Positions 52,512 through 60,000 of a DNA stretch of 64,000 bases are shown one piece after another; positions within the stretch are counted from its first letter, which is position 1, and each line of letters begins with the position of its first letter. The DNA comes from Geosiphon pyriformis uo1 (taxonomy: Eukaryota > Fungi > Glomeromycota): contig JAAOMT010000523.1 in assembly GCA_016748015.1 (NCBI GenBank), positions 1,134,437-1,198,436 of the forward strand. Direction: 5' to 3'. The translations under genes and the position numbers were made by a program. The notes below the pieces were generated by a model. That model ran no database searches. It saw only the letters and a list, made by a program, of their open reading frames with translations, and was not told the origin of the DNA.

Positions 52512-54869
52512 TTAGTATAAGTTGTCTAAGATACAAAAAGGATCTTTCTTTTGTTTTTGCTTTTTCAAAGGAGACTCTGTAGTTTCATGCAATGGTGATG
52601 AGGGTGGAGACGGAGTAGAAAGTCTTTTTTGAGAATATTTTCGAATCTTTGCAACCAGTTCTATTTGTGTATGCTAAATAATAAAAATAAAAATAATGTG
52701 AACACTGGTGGAATGATTGAAAAGGAAAATATATTATGTATAGCCATATATACCCGTAATGCTAGAAGATTTTCCAAGAAATCTGGCAAAAGGTCTTCCA
52801 TCTCAGATAAAATTGTTGGCAACATCAATGTCACCATCTCAGTAAAAAAATAAATTTTTTTTGAAGTATTGTATACAAGGGAATAGATCGTCCACCTTGT
52901 GCCTATACCAAATAAGAAAAATTTTAGCAGAAAAAATTTAAATTGCACTAAATAAATAAGATGCATTTTTACACATACCTGTAATCTGAATGCCCATTAC
53001 AAAGACCTCTTCAAGTTCATTTTTTTTAAAATGTAATTTATTCCAAAAGGAATCAAGACAGTCCTTCATTACTATTTTTATTTTAGAATGATCTTGCCGG
53101 AACTTGGTATCATCCATGGGACCTTCAGTATTCCCTGCTTCAAGCACCAATAATTCGACTTTGTAAGAACGTAATGATATTATTAAATCCATCTTTTTCG
53201 ATGGTGGTTCTAATTCCATATATTCTTCATGTACAAATTTTCGCTTTCTACATGTAACACTATGAGAGTCTTTTTCAATCCTAAAAAAATTTAAAAGTTG
53301 ATATTATTGGAAGATCATTCCAATGTAAAATTTTGACACCTACCAGTTAAGCTCGAAAGTGCCAATATCAAATTCTTCAAATATGAATCCAATAATTGGG
53401 CTTAGTATCTTGACAATGTAATCTCTTTCCCGATGTTGCATTACAAGAATGTTTACTTCCCTCCGTAAACAGAGATGGCTAAATAAAATTTCAGTTAGTA
53501 TCCATAAAAAACAATTCAATGACCTTCCATTTTGTTCCGTTCAAATGTTCAGCCATAACTTACAAAAATTCAATAACTCCAGCAGTCAATTGGGCATCTT
53601 CAGATTTTAAAATTGAGAATTTGTCTTTCCATAATTTTAAATCATTTAATGATCTCTATAAAAATACAATAATAATCTATAAATATGTTATAAGCAATGT
53701 AACTACAAACAAAAAAAAATAACCTACCATTTGGCCACATCCATCATGTAACAAATTTTGTGCTCCCTTGTCAATTAAATCCTTACATAATTTCTTCTTT
53801 GATCTGTTAAACAATTGAGCATAATCCGATGTTTTTAGTATTCTGCCCCAATCAACTTTCTTCCAATTTGAGAGATCTACAATTCGTGATTCAATGGACC
53901 TGGATTTTTTTTTTAGTAATTGAACGGAGAATGAATATTATTTGCTAAAAGCATACAGTTACAAATCATTACTATAACATACTGCACTCGCAAATTTTCT
54001 TGCTTTAATCTTTCCATAACTTTATCCCAAATTTCCTCAAGATTTAAATTGGAAAATATCAAATCAGATATCTGCAACAGTAATGAAAATTTCAAATATT
54101 GTTTAAAAGATTATGTTAAAATAAAAAAACTGTCCTCATTATAAATACCTTATCCACAATAATACTATCAATTTCCGGATTATTTACATCTTGGTCATGA
54201 GTGCTTAATATTTGTATATTTTCGTAAACAATTGGGTTGTTATTAGGATTCATGGAGTTATGCTTGAGAATAAGAAAAACTTATTAAGTAACCCAAAGTA
54301 CAATTTGTCTCAAGATAGTAACATAAACAAACCTCAGCTTCATTTGATGTTTTTTTAACATTGAAGGAATTTTCAGAGTCGTGTCCAGTGAATAGTGTTT
54401 TGGAATGACTGCTTACTGAAGAAGGTATTTCTGATCGAAGAGAGTTCAATTTCATGTCCATCATTTGTACTGCAACTTCTGATCCATATAGATTAGTTTT
54501 TGTTTCAAATAAATTTTCATTCACCTGTAAACCAGTTAGTTTTTTTGCAAGTAAATCAATAATAAAAATTAATAAATTATTTCTTACCCTTTTATCCATT
54601 CTGTCGAAAACTGCTGTAGCCTCTTTGAATTGGAAAATTCTTTCCACGTCATTATAAAGTTTTGTAGCTTTATCCTGTGCCTTTTTATTTATTGAACAAT
54701 GTGTACTTGCTAATTGAAGCTGATGTTTAAATTCAGCTATGATACCCTCACGATTTTCGGATGTGACCATTGTACAATTTTTTTCAATAGAATCTAGACA
54801 ATCTATGATGCACCATTTCGAATAGTTTGTTTCCCTAAAGTACTTGCTGATCTCATCTGAAGTTTTCAT
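52512..54869 (-). CDS. Intact 10-exon, 562-aa protein with C-terminal PD-(D/E)xK restriction-endonuclease-fold domain (Crinkler CR-REase-like)
   Basis: Exons 54869-54588, 54524-54333, 54262-54149, 54071-53983, 53899-53728, 53655-53564, 53478-53344, 53280-52979, 52902-52754 and 52673-52512. All are GT-AG, phase-consistent, and sum to 1689 nt with no internal stop. Motifs: ERDYIVKILSPII...W.E..S...KKMD...ELLVLEAG...KFRQDHSKIK. Confidence 0.85.
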
Positions 54870-54958
54870 GCTAAATAATAATAAACATTGTTAATACAAA
54901 GTTAATGTCAATAATTTTTCTTTTAAAAAGAAAATTGTTGGCATAGACATAATGATCT

Positions 54959-55219
54959 CTGGAAAGAAGTTGCCAATCTCATGTGCTAAAGCCGATCCTA
55001 GCAGGAGCATGACGCCTACTTTCCAAACATCGATCGAGGGAGGTCCACAGTAAGTGAAGCAGTTCCCACGCATCGTAGGGAGGCATTAAGTCTAATATAC
55101 TGGAAAGAAGTTGCCAATCTCATGTGCTAAGCCGATCCTAGCAGGAGCATGACGCCTACTTTCCAAACATCGATCGAGGGAGGTCCACAGTAAGTGAAGC
55201 AGTTCCCACGCATCGTAGG
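54959..55219. repeat. Near-perfect ~120-bp direct repeat x2 separated by 20 bp
   Basis: 54959-55079 and 55100-55219 are identical apart from a 1-nt indel; GC/CpG-rich; flanked by inverted repeat TGTTGGCA (54936) / TGCCAACA (55238). Confidence 0.97.
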
Positions 55220-55791
55220 ATATTGTAGTTTGCCAACATTTGAACAAAAAAATGCTACGCATACTTTCCTGATATAATGGTATATACTAGGATGAGAAAT
55301 CTTGAAAACAAAACAAAAGTTGTCTATTTAAATTATGCGTTAACACGTGTTCTCTGTTACGTAATAACCATACTAAATCAAAAATAACATATTAATATAA
55401 TTTCACCGTGTAACAATTAATATGCGCACATTTTAAAAAGTCCAAAATAACAATTCAATAAATAGTTAATCATCATCATCATATGTATGATTTTTTCTCA
55501 ACAAATATAAAATAGAGTAAATATTTTATATATTTTCACTTTATTAGTGATAGCATAATACAAAATTATAATCAAATTTATAGGATGAAAATTTCAGTCA
55601 ATATTGTTAAATGTTAATAGATTTTAAACTTTTTTTAATTAAATAAATCAAATAAAAAGATTTTAGATTAATAATATTCCAAATTAATGTTTTTTTATTG
55701 TTTAGTTTATTAATTATGTTTATAAATATTCTAATTAAAAAACATTATCAAAATAATTTTTTGGTTATTGTTATTTAAATAATAAATACAG

Positions 55792-56756
55792 TGTTATCGG
55801 AGGTTTTTGGTCTCTTTTCTTTAATGTTGTTGATGCCTGTTTACTGTAAATTCACATTTTCTGGATGTGGTTGAACCTCTAGTAACTGAATTTATCTTCA
55901 AATTATCTCCTATAATTTAAACTGCTGGGCTTATAAGTGGAATGGCCAATTCCATGCCAGTTACTTTATATAGTTATGTGGTAGTAAACGTCAACTCTTT
56001 CCCAGGAATTGCTTATCTGGAAGCTCACTAAAAATGTGTAGTTACTTTGCTGTGAAAATCAACTCTTCTATAGAAGTTCTTGTCTGTAGGCTACTCAACT
56101 AATTTATAATAAGAAAAGAAAGAGAATAAAAGAAATGTAAAAGAAAAAGTAAAACTGATAATTTATGGAAGTCATTTCGGATCCAGGCCTGGAAGTGCTT
56201 TAATAGTTTACTGAAATTGGTAGCTAGTCAATTTCAAACTGTTAGTAGGAATTGGTTAATTTCAAGAGAAATAATTAAGGATTTGATTTTTTGAATTATT
56301 TGATATTTATTTTGTTTTTGTACGTAAAGGATGATTCTAATTATTCAATCTAAAGCAAGATACATTTTCTCGAAAAGAGAAGCTCTTCTTTTATACAACT
56401 TGTCATAACACTATTCTATGAACTTGAACTTTGCTATTTTCTATAATTTTGCTGAACTAAAGATATATTTCAGTAAACTACAAGTTATTTCTGTGAACTA
56501 TTAGATTTTTCGGCAAACTATCAATTATTTCGGCACACTTTTTGAATGTTACATAGTTCGGGATATTGCATAATTGATCATTGTAATTAGGTTACATTTG
56601 TGTTATGTACAAATTGGGTTATTAATTAAATGATAATTTTGGATATTTTGCTAATGTAATACATGATAATTTGAAATGATAATATATGCTAATTAATGAT
56701 AAGATTTATAAGGGTAATTTTATGCTAAACAATATCTCTAATTTTGTCTGGCAACA
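55792..56756. mobile_element. Solo LTR family C, copy C2 (inverted relative to C1)
   Basis: TGTTATCGG...GGCAACA termini; TSD ACAG (55788-55791, 56757-56760). Confidence 0.92.
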
Positions 56757-57067: not shown

Positions 57068-60000
57068 CTAGGCACCTATATGCACCGAGACCAAGTTACT
57101 TACACCTGAAAAAAATAAACTAGATTTACAAAACCCAAAACTAACACCAAGTGCATCAGCAATACCCAACAATCTAACCACACTGGACGAGAGCACTAAA
57201 GAAAGACCAGAAACCGAGATAGAAATAGAGTCGTCACATGAGACCAAGCCACCTTTCTCTATAACAGCTCTGTGTTTCACACGCACCAGCCAAATATCAT
57301 CACAGAATGCAAGACAGAATTCATGAACAAATGCCACAATATTTTGAGCCACTGTTTTAGAGTTTTTGAAAACAGAAAGAGATTCACAATACCACTCATT
57401 GAAAACAAAGCCCTTACATATAGCCGTACTAACAACAGCATCAGAAGTACAAGCAGAAAGCAACTGTGAAACACATGAAGTCGAGTGAGATAAACCTGAT
57501 CACGTTTTCCAAACAGATGCATAAGTGTTTATCAACCTAGCATAATCACCAGCATCGAATAGGCACAAAAACACATGATCACCAGCATCAAATGGGCACG
57601 AAAACACATAATTTGAAATTTCAACATCACTACAAAACAAACACATCACACTGGGGTATTCCTTATTGTAAAGCCACTTTTGCACAGCAACAGGAAGATG
57701 ATAATGCAACGCTTTCATAAAATATGTCTGAGATCCAGCAGTATGAACACTAGTGAAACCAGCAGCCAAGTAAGAGTCCGGATGCCACACCGAACATGAT
57801 CTGAACCAATCAACATCAATACGTAGGCTATCCACCAATACCCGAGAACCAGAACCGACCTCCCAATGTGCATAGTAAATAGAGTGAAAAACACCATGAA
57901 CAAAATGCCTAGAATTACCAGAAACCACAGTACCACCAGCCTTAAGAAAATGTTCATCGATCCTGTAAGGAAGACACACATCAGAAGACGTAGCAGCTCT
58001 AGCCAAAGTGTTAGCACACTCATTGCCCAAGACTCCAGAGTGACCTCTAACTTTAATCCAATTAACATCCAAATTTTTGCGATGAATGACATTAAAAATA
58101 TGGTGGCGTTCGACCCAACACCGATTTCTGAAATCTGGACGCTCCAACATTAACTCTGACTTGCATGCATTCAAAGCGGCCTGGCTGTCCGAAAACAGAT
58201 TAACTGAACGAGAAGGAGGGACACACTCGAGAGCCAAAGCAATAGCCTGCAGCTCTGTCATGATAGAAGAAACCAAACCAGAAACTTCCACACCCAAACC
58301 CAAATCAATGTCCTTAAAAAAAACAGCTGCGTCAGCCTTCATATCAAGAGTACCCAGCCCACACAAAGAACCATCCGTAAACAGAGAAAGGCAATTGGAA
58401 TCAACCTTCAACAAGCGATTACAAACAACATCAAACTCACAAGACTCAAGTACATCAGACGAGTCAACATTTAGTGGCAAAAGAGAACAAATGGGAGATG
58501 ACCCAGAACCAGACAAAAAGTGAACAGCAGCAATGAATCAATCAGGAATCAGGCCCCAAGGGTCCAGTCTTTTCCATCATTTGAAAGTCCTCCATTCGAA
58601 AACAGAACCAGTTCGATCGCGAAGCTGCTTAACAAAGGCAATTCCATATCACCGAAGCGAAGAGACACATTTATAAAAAGTAAACTCGCCAAGCACAATA
58701 GACATTGGGGTCCCCTTTTGAAAACGAAAAACATTGATCACGAGACCACCCAGAGAAAGGTTGCAACCCAAAAAAATCCGAACAACACCAGCCAAAAAAT
58801 TATTCAAAGGATTGACATTAATACGAGAAGGGAAAAGCAGGGAGTGACGAGGGCACCAGCTGAGAACCTGTAAATCATGAGATCTATGTGCGAACAGGCA
58901 GCCCAAAATACCTACTGAATTGGCAAAACAAACAACAGCAGCTAATTTGCTCTCAGCCTGGATCTGTTCAAAAGATTTCAACCTGTACAGAGAAGGATGA
59001 TGAATAGTATTATTGGAAAAGTCGAGTGGCAGGCCAGATTTGGACTTCAAACTTTTACGAATCATAGTGTCCCATTTTGCACACACACTAATAGGAACAA
59101 AACTAAACTGAGTCCTGTAGGCAATTATGGAGTGAAGAACTGCTGACACCAAATACGAGAACTGCTTATAAGAGATAGCCTTTCTCAGAACAAGGTTGGT
59201 GAAAAACTGGACATCCAAGCGTGCCTTAGCCAAGCTAGACTTTGACAAACCTTCAGTAGACAGAAAGATACCCAGGTACCGATAAGGCTCTCCCTTTTTG
59301 GCTATCAAAATAGGCAAACCACTGATCAACAAATGAGAACTGGAAACTCTACAATTAATGGGAATGGCCACCGTTTTGTCATTATTGATCGAAATGTCAT
59401 TGACTCAAAAAAACTCACTAGCAACATTGAGAATATGTTGGGTGGCAGCCTGGCTGCTACCAATCCAAATCATATTGTTGACGAAAACACCAGCAGTAAG
59501 AAAAGAAGTCAAACCAGCCCAAGATTTAGCGCAACCAGTGTTGGCAACAAAACGAGAGTCTAACTTGTATCCACATACACTTTCTTGTCTCTTGACCTCA
59601 CACAAAAGAGGATCATAAAATATGCGTCAGAGAAGAGGAGAAAACACCTCCTCTTGATCCAAACCATCATGTACTCAATATCTATCAGTCAACCCAAAAC
59701 CCATCATAACTCTGTTGATCCGATCATTGTGGATGCTACCAAAAAACCGAATGAATTTTTTACACATTTTTATTCTGACCAAGCTTTTCCTCAGATGCTC
59801 TCAGCCAACAGAATCATAAGCCTTTTGCATGTCTTGTAAGACCAGCCACAGCTCTCGGTTCTTTTCCAAAGCATCCTCAATGACCGATCCAATAGCAAAA
59901 ATAGGAGACTGCATGGTCGTGCCTTTTAAAACAGAAAAATTATCTCCCTTTAGAACGTCGAAAACACTACAAGCCGAAGAAATTCTGTCCGAAAGCACTT

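Follow-up and report, generated by a model that had tools for sequence, protein, structure and literature searches.

A conserved two-module RNA domain in the probable 5'-UTR intron of a nuclease-like gene family of Glomeromycota

The locus in Geosiphon pyriformis

In the genome of the glomeromycotan fungus Geosiphon pyriformis uo1, two nearly identical repeats lie directly upstream of a gene for a nuclease-like protein, on the minus strand of a 64,000-nucleotide (nt) stretch of DNA (assembly GCA_016748015.1, contig JAAOMT010000523.1, positions 1,134,437 to 1,198,436 of the forward strand; hereafter "the window", in whose numbering all positions are given). This repeat cassette is predicted to fold into a single RNA domain of two modules, and it is conserved, with compensatory changes, at homologous genes of other fungi of the phylum. 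The two copies, unit A at 55100-55219 (120 nt) and unit B at 54959-55079 (121 nt), differ solely by one A in a short run; tandem repeats finder (TRF) reports a period of 140 with 99% matches. They are separated by a 20-nt interval (55080-55099; minus strand, UAUAUUAGACUUAAUGCCUC) and bracketed by an 8-bp inverted repeat (55231-55238 and 54936-54943). The units are 51% GC with an observed/expected CpG ratio of 0.76, whereas their flanks are 28% GC with a ratio of 0.52. An earlier interpretation, made from the DNA letters alone and called here the sequence-only reading, had described two CpG-rich, near-identical copies of about 120 nt with one indel, 20 nt apart, and an 8-bp inverted repeat around them; the coordinates and the TRF result agree with that description.

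The cassette sits within 394 nt (54871-55264) that are probably a spliced intron in the 5' untranslated region (5'-UTR). The putative donor GT occupies 55264-55263, in the context GGAAA/GUAUGC (the slash marks the junction), and the putative acceptor AG occupies 54872-54871, 1 nt 5' of the ATG at 54869; both had been placed correctly from the outset. Do these signals recur in relatives? The donor context CAGGAAA/GUAUG is found in the window and at a metagenome locus (L082), and a donor-like context recurs at the related loci L009, L010, L101 and L014. A candidate branch point, CAUUAAC, lies at 54901-54907, about 30 nt 5' of the acceptor. The branch-like (A)UUAAC is found at this distance in L009, L010, L101 and L014 as well, and L082 has GCUAAU. 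In the window and at all five of these loci, a pyrimidine tract and an AG acceptor end 0-1 nt before the ATG. Donor, branch-like motif and acceptor thus recur in intact relatives, and the proposed 5'-UTR intron looks to be just that. The 394 nt hold 14 ATGs, so an unspliced leader should not permit translation of the main frame.

The open reading frame (ORF) that starts at the ATG at 54869 comprises 203 codons on the minus strand. Coding exon 1 (54588-54869) encodes a 94-residue N-terminal domain beginning MKTSDEISKYF. After codon 94 there follows an apparent in-frame intron of 63 nt (54525-54587, minus strand; GUAAGA...UUUACAG), through which the 203-codon ORF reads; the orthologue at L082 has an intron at the same place. 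An exon with a divergent PD-(D/E)XK-like core lies at 52941-53303 on the same strand, the support for its fold coming only via a family member, P0012.

Occurrence of the cassette at homologous genes

A BLAST search with the unit in the 128-Mb assembly returned this locus only. Homologues of the window ORF were found in Dentiscutata erythropus and Cetraspora pellucida, and a sensitive local BLAST on the contigs of these fungi revealed a tandem unit pair directly upstream of the homologous start codon. Further loci were found with a covariance model of the unit (R1) and with motif scans: tandem units are also present at one further paralogue each in Cetraspora (L101) and Dentiscutata (L100) and on two metagenome contigs (L082 and L091), and the Geosiphon genome itself has two paralogous loci, C702 with two units and C640 with four. 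Tandem units thus stand upstream of homologous genes at L009, L010, L101 and L100 (Gigasporaceae), L082 and L091 (metagenome), C702 and C640. The loci fall into three paralogue clades, none of them restricted to a single organism, and without exception they lie at this gene family. The sequence-only reading had proposed co-occurrence with paralogues of the nuclease-like gene as a check, and had counted a unique or unlinked unit against itself; all loci in this genome and in its relatives lie at this family, and the unit recurs at homologous genes in several genera.

The sensitivity of these searches differed. R1 with default filters misses the C640-type units, which are found weakly with the filters off. 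A genome-wide scan for a signature pattern (CCUAY, gap, AUGYUUGG, gap, CUUUCCAG) matched at C692 (the window locus), C702 and C640 only, with no control hits, and the same pattern had no hits in 185,579 bacterial and archaeal genomes. The pattern scan of metagenomes matched 77 contigs, but real cassettes are confined to L082 and L091. With R1 and the motif scans, no cassette was detected at the family members of Diversispora, Funneliformis or Entrophospora, nor at the Geosiphon paralogues C701 and C490, whose similarity is restricted to the C-terminal half of the gene.

The cassette is conserved as well as coding exon 1 or better, and above the remainder of the intron: nucleotide identities are 72-75% for the cassette, 65-72% for coding exon 1 and 49-59% for the rest of the intron.

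Fold of the units and of the whole cassette

Folded alone on the gene strand, every unit is predicted to form a 4-nt CCUA tail, a hairpin (P1, in which unit positions 5-16 pair with 39-49), a hinge of sequence AUGYUU and, 3' of it, a long irregular hairpin (P2). The base of P2 is UGGAAAG/CUUUCCA, its apical stem is CUAGG...CUUAG, and a G follows it. In unit A, the CCUA tail precedes P1 at 55215-55171, the hinge (AUGUU) at 55170-55166 and P2 at 55165-55101; in unit B, it precedes P1 at 55075-55031, the hinge at 55030-55026 and P2 at 55025-54960. RNAalifold independently yields the same unit fold. The strands at the junction, namely CCUA, AUGYUU and the P2 base UGGAAAG/CUUUCCAG, are invariant.

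The stems are supported by compensatory changes. Over 20 units, 78% of the cells of the lower P1 stem are paired, compared to 26-47% in slid controls; compensatory changes occur in 7 of its 11 pairs, and none of 500 shuffles reached its score. For the whole unit in clade 1, the paired fraction is 92% (slid controls, 34-49%), with eight compensatory pairs and, again, no shuffle among 500 that reached the score. Between the window and its paralogue C702, 5 of the 11 P1 pairs are altered on both sides with the pairing kept. Because sequence-only MAFFT alignments of all clades (A1 and A8) misplace the stems, with RNAalifold finding 7 pairs only on A1, the P1 domain, the clade-1 units and the B modules were analysed as separate alignments (A4, A6 and A9). 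Two hairpins had been suggested from the letters of the window. The long one corresponds to P2 and is both the minimum-energy and the conserved fold. The other, CCUACG/CGUGGG, can form in the window copy but is contradicted by the units Cetr_B and Cet2_B and by C702, all of which keep P1.

Modelled as a whole, the cassette is one closed, sense-strand RNA domain of about 300 nt, in which an outer helix (P0) would surround two three-way-junction modules, each predicted to combine P1 and the long P2 with a helix, PA or PB, that closes the module. P0 is built from the inverted repeat, with its 5' arm UGUUGGCA at 55231-55238 and its 3' arm UGCCAACA at 54936-54943. Five of seven loci have it in their minimum-free-energy (MFE) structures, and the RNAalifold consensus includes it; its arms are replaced by CUACAUC/GAUGUAG in L100 and read UGACA/UGUCA in L010. 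Given six whole cassettes, RNAalifold predicted PB and P0 unaided. PB would close unit B by pairing AGAC (55093-55090) and UAAUG (55088-55084) of the linker with GUCU (54948-54945) and CAUUA (54954-54950), the two parts of a 3' strand at 54945-54954. PA, the helix that would close unit A, is plausible only: CAAUAU (55220-55225), just upstream of that unit, can pair with the linker AUAUUG (AUAUU at 55098-55094), and L100 has CGGU/GCCG. PA is short and mostly invariant, and the hinge CGAUGU is predicted to compete for these linker bases.

On which strand does the element act? The whole-cassette fold of the gene strand has an energy of -107.8 kcal/mol (z = -5.6), and none of 100 shuffles is as good; the opposite strand yields -84.5 kcal/mol (z = -1.3). 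The gene strand is more stable than its complement in 18 of the 20 units, by a mean of about 8 kcal/mol, and has about twice as many G-U pairs. The proposal of a structured sense-strand RNA element is supported.

Other features were judged by eye and dropped. A kissing interaction between the P2 loops is not sustained in the relatives, where the GAUC that is palindromic here is not so; a CCUA/UAGG pseudoknot lacked informative variation; and hammerhead-, HDV- and pistol-like cores, Pol III A and B boxes, and PUF or Sm sites had no covariation or conservation.

The interval between the units

The sequence-only reading had speculated that the cassette comprises a scaffold plus a 20-nt guide, which raises the question of whether the interval varies among loci. 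From this genome to Gigasporaceae, at all loci and in all three paralogue clades, it reads UAUAUURRACUURAU plus 5-7 variable bases. With UAAUG and the GAC before it, the latter form helix PB by pairing with the sequence 3' of unit B (AUCCAUUA...GUC and variants), and they covary with this flank. The PB duplex has an energy of -9.35 kcal/mol with cognate flanks, compared to -5.59 kcal/mol with non-cognate ones. On alignment A9, 87% of PB cells are paired (slid controls, 31-64%), compensatory changes occur in 4 of 8 pairs, and 1 of 500 shuffles reached the score. As modelled, the supposed spacer is a strand common to both closing helices, one half belonging to unit A and the other to unit B. Matches to the interval with at most two mismatches in the own genome numbered 36, versus 28 for the reversed control, and the real ones are cassettes; viral collections were not searched. 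A variable guide is excluded because the interval is conserved across genera and paired within the cassette.

RNA-guided nuclease loci, such as CRISPR arrays and the omega RNA of TnpB/Fanzor, resemble the cassette in having a structured RNA beside a nuclease-like gene and, on the face of it, a repeat-interval-repeat layout. In contrast to those systems, the interval here is invariant and internally paired, with no targets found in the own genome; the protein is PD-(D/E)XK-like and not of the RuvC or HNH kind; and the RNA is located in a 5' intron instead of at a transposon end.

Could the repeats be neutral, as a recent tandem duplication, a MITE-like insert or a foreign fragment without function? 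The 99% identity of the copies, the likeness of the 8-bp inverted repeat to terminal inverted repeats, and the position of the units as a GC-rich island in AT-rich DNA would suit such an origin. However, a cassette with compensatory changes is found in several genera and in three paralogue clades, and the 128-Mb assembly holds only three loci, all of them paralogues. The absence of the signature from the prokaryotic genomes scanned also argues against a foreign fragment. A MITE or transposon remnant was rejected on similar grounds, as the 8-bp arms covary as an RNA helix and no target duplication was seen. A guide cassette is opposed by the conservation and pairing of the interval and the lack of genomic targets. 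As we read the comparative data, they already contradict both the neutral-repeat and the guide explanations, which together we deem the least credible of those considered here.

History of the two copies

Across species of Gigasporaceae, upstream units group with upstream units and downstream units with downstream units: Dent_A and Cet2_A are 95% identical, and Dent_B and Cet2_B 88% (P1 domain). By comparison, A and B within a Gigasporaceae locus are 64-65% identical over whole units. The Gigasporaceae A units share a shortened P2, of which half is missing. The two units of a locus are 80-88% alike in L082, L100 and L091, with compensatory differences between them. The pair is therefore old. 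In the Geosiphon genome, identity between A and B reaches 99% at C692 as well as at C702, and it is 97% among the four units of C640; only in this genome have the copies been homogenised, and recently so, by conversion or re-duplication. The suggestion that the cassette is simply a very recent duplication is thus half right: the 99% identity reflects recent homogenisation, whereas the two-unit layout is ancient.

At C640 (L013, 4416-5122, minus strand) we observed four units of about 147 nt whose linkers alternate between long (47 nt) and short (22 nt), which implies that whole modules were re-duplicated along with their closing strands. The C640 exon 1 has no ATG and contains three stop codons. 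A further copy of the C640 type, C654 (L106, 1370-1690, minus strand), has internal deletions in both units, and its exon appears by eye to be degraded; cassette and gene seem to decay together there. In the Cetraspora pellucida paralogue L101 (2314-2380), a 1-nt deletion follows the ATG and a TGA stands in place of the TGG of its relatives, while the upstream units look intact, the A unit being 95% identical to that of Dentiscutata. In Gigaspora margarita (L094, 1901-2011), a half-unit remnant, consisting of the P2 half of one unit, is found with the 3' flank upstream of an apparently intact start codon; the cassette can therefore be lost.

Comparison with known RNA classes

We searched positions 54000-56500, on both strands, with the Rfam 15 models (cmscan, E <= 10). 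Nothing overlapped 54959-55079, and the sole match touching unit A was a weak one to TtnuCD31 (18.2 bits, where the gathering score is 75; E = 9.6). That match spans 55213-55273, covering the P0 5' arm and the donor and clipping 7 nt of unit A. Three other matches at this threshold lie outside the cassette. No Rfam 15 model of a known ribozyme, riboswitch or small nuclear RNA (snRNA) fits the units.

The architecture of the unit invites comparison with intron-hosted clusters of small nucleolar RNAs (snoRNAs), which are likewise intronic and tandem, with hairpin-hinge-hairpin units of about 120 nt. Each unit might accordingly be an independently processed noncoding RNA of a new snoRNA- or snRNA-like class, for which the intron is merely the host, and the persistence or amplification of units at C640 and L101 despite a damaged coding exon would fit. 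However, the boxes that define the known classes (ANANNA with ACA, or RUGAUGA with CUGA) are absent. The hinge AUGYUU holds no H box, there is no ACA (the unit tail is CCAG, followed by UAUAUU or AAAUCC), and no pseudouridylation pocket is evident; an H/ACA assignment was rejected on these counts. A C/D assignment was likewise rejected: CCUAYGAUGC is present at the 5' end in some units only, with GGCAC or GUCUG in paralogues, and there is no CUGA at the 3' end. The hinge between P1 and P2 (AUGUUUGG or AUGCUUGG) has a G or C inside the U run, compared to the Sm consensus RAU(4-6)GR, and it would make a poor Sm site, as would the longer AUGYUUGG. The units match no Rfam model and are never found away from the gene family. 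Unlike snoRNAs in their clusters, they are joined in one paired domain, in which linker and flanks participate, and this opposes their separate release; the short Gigasporaceae A units, which lack half of P2, are a further difficulty. We regard an independent, hosted RNA as improbable.

Fungal thiamine pyrophosphate (TPP) riboswitches sit in 5'-UTR introns, e.g., that of Neurospora NMT1, and switch splicing. By analogy, the two three-way junctions could be tandem aptamers that bind a small ligand and thereby switch the splicing of the 5'-UTR intron. The invariant junction nucleotides with freely covarying stems, the tandem equivalent modules, the intron location and the two mutually exclusive partners of the linker AUAUUG, namely CAAUAU and the hinge CGAUGU, all recall such RNAs. 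Yet the cassette matches neither the TPP model nor any other Rfam riboswitch, there is no candidate ligand, the host gene is, as far as can be told, neither metabolic nor a transporter gene, and a protein ligand explains the same features. A riboswitch is thus very improbable in our estimation.

A nested U12-type intron was also considered. Here, AUAUCCU (55220-55226, minus strand) would be a minor 5' splice site, ACUURAU a branch site (ACUUAAU at 55085-55091, 11 nt before CCUAC), and the end of CCUAC an AC 3' terminus, such that one repeat period would constitute a minor intron. The motifs, with a spacing of 11-13 nt, are present in the window, L009, L010, L082 and L014; their conservation is limited to clade 1 and C702. 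Also in favour of this possibility, the minor spliceosome is active in Glomeromycota, where some 205 introns are of the minor type (PMC10639083). Against it, L100 lacks the 5' motif (GGUCCUAC), C640 and L091 have it in altered form (AUAUACCU) and clade 3 has lost it; the would-be 3' dinucleotide is AU in two of eight loci; the branch motif is paired in PB; and splicing would leave an AUG-rich leader. We accord this interpretation a very slim chance.

The host protein and a possible RNA partner

Over the first 130-150 or so aligned residues, the exon 1 region is 44-46% identical in amino acids to P0001 and P0003 (local tblastn). In our search, matches to the family were confined to Glomeromycota, namely Gigasporaceae, Entrophospora, Acaulospora, Funneliformis and Diversispora. 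No Pfam match and no PDB sequence match were found for the family, nor did a PDB profile search return anything. For P0012, the AlphaFold model is poor (pLDDT 41.6), but its order of strands and helices would fit a core of the alpha-beta-beta-beta-alpha-beta type, arranged around the invariant residues D, E and K, and the ESM Atlas model of the same protein resembles PD-(D/E)XK clusters (PDDEXK_12; TM score of 0.72 over 181 residues). The N-terminal domain had no meaningful structural neighbour. The window gene shares mainly its N-terminal ~130 residues with the cassette-bearing relatives; its C-terminal core is divergent within the family and occurs also in C701 and C490, paralogues in the same genome that have no cassette. 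"Nuclease-like" is therefore a lead and not a demonstration: the linkage to such a family that the sequence-only reading proposed holds, but the nuclease assignment itself derives from the structural look-alike PDDEXK_12.

Two other members of the family have inserts of their own. In Diversispora epigaea (P0012; L095, 8447-8700), tandem units of about 66 nt, richer in GC and with a different motif, lie in the intron after the exon for the N-terminal domain. In Funneliformis geosporum (P0010; L096, 4813-5093), the first intron contains an island of 45-52% GC in AT-rich DNA, which may be a structured insert. These different structured or GC-rich inserts in early introns of other subfamilies support a family-wide association.

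The linkage to this protein suggests another fate for the RNA. The excised domain, closed by P0, might survive as a stable RNA and assemble with the nuclease-like protein encoded by the same transcript, serving it as scaffold or cofactor, with no variable guide involved. In three paralogue clades, the tie between RNA and gene family is strict and ancient, which is in keeping with this idea, as are the structured intronic inserts of other subfamilies. The closed, fully paired architecture would resist exonucleases, and two modules could fit a dimeric protein of the PD-(D/E)XK type, a fold that is itself only a lead given the AlphaFold confidence noted above. On the other hand, the accumulation of the excised RNA is purely hypothetical, and the invariant bases are common to all paralogues although the proteins are only 28-46% identical. 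We also know of no PD-(D/E)XK nuclease with an RNA cofactor of this kind. Overall, we consider an RNA partner, the main rival to control in cis, unlikely. The wider form of the idea, in which the two-module RNA is such a partner and a whole superfamily of nuclease-like proteins in Glomeromycota each has its own intron-encoded structured RNA, is more doubtful still; if true, it would amount to a eukaryotic RNA-protein nuclease system of a previously undescribed kind.

Elsewhere in the window, an ORF of 338 codons (57500-58516, minus strand) lies about 2 kb upstream of the cassette in a block of 40-48% GC; by eye, it recalls an RNase H or retrotransposon protein.

Discussion

What might the domain do? 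We favour, at about an even chance, the view that it is an RNA platform of two modules, acting in cis, by which removal of the 5'-UTR intron of its host gene is controlled. We do so because the linkage to the family is strict, the cassette diverges in step with the paralogues, the junction bases are fixed, and removal of the intron is a precondition for translation. The domain would act in cis, with its two equivalent modules serving as a binding platform for a trans-acting factor; the latter might be dimeric and might be the family's own protein or a shared splicing factor. By deciding whether the intron is removed, this factor would set the level of productive splicing: a retained intron would place 14 AUGs before the start codon, and its removal would be needed for translation. 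P0 may hold the splice site and the branch region close together. The joint decay of units and gene at C654 counts in favour of such a role. A splicing riboregulator had been among the suggestions of the sequence-only reading, and it remains the most economical explanation.

There is a precedent for some of these features in yeast, where the RPL22 protein acts on a structured intron of its own gene (PMC4838235, PMC5755908). Like the cassette, the structured introns of RPL22A/B and RPL30 (PMC4838235, PMC5755908) have a conserved fold near the 5' end of the gene that is kept in paralogues, and their removal is required for expression. The fold described here differs in its size (about 300 nt) and in its two three-way-junction modules within closing helices, and its host encodes a lineage-specific, nuclease-like protein.

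The comparisons show the structure and its strand, its conservation by compensatory changes, the linkage to the gene family and the conserved splice signals; that the stretch is spliced, that a factor binds it and that control is exerted at splicing are inferences. Several points weigh against control of splicing. Splicing and retention of the intron are putative, and the factor is hypothetical. In the predicted structures, the splice sites are not sequestered by the fold, such that the route by which it would gate splicing is uncertain. The domain is more elaborate than known splicing-control stems, and neither Pfam nor structure comparison disclosed a recognisable RNA-binding domain in the host protein. 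The units are intact and amplified at C640 despite the stop codons in exon 1, and the L101 cassette is intact despite a frameshifted exon 1; these cassettes could reflect a function independent of the coding gene. Finally, G-U and A-C cells in the relatives are equal in number (13 versus 13), with no strand asymmetry, and the strand assignment thus rests on the energies and the gene context.

To our knowledge, large and intricate RNAs supported by covariation are rare in eukaryotic nuclear genomes. In the literature and in Rfam, we found no such folded RNA described for arbuscular-mycorrhizal fungi. The element described here has persisted through deep divergences within the phylum, in front of a nuclease-like gene family specific to this lineage. 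It thereby offers a concrete, testable case in which either the fold of an intron controls its host gene or the intron supplies an RNA partner to the protein that the gene encodes. Together with the inserts in related genes of Diversispora and Funneliformis, it points to a family-wide relationship between RNA and protein.

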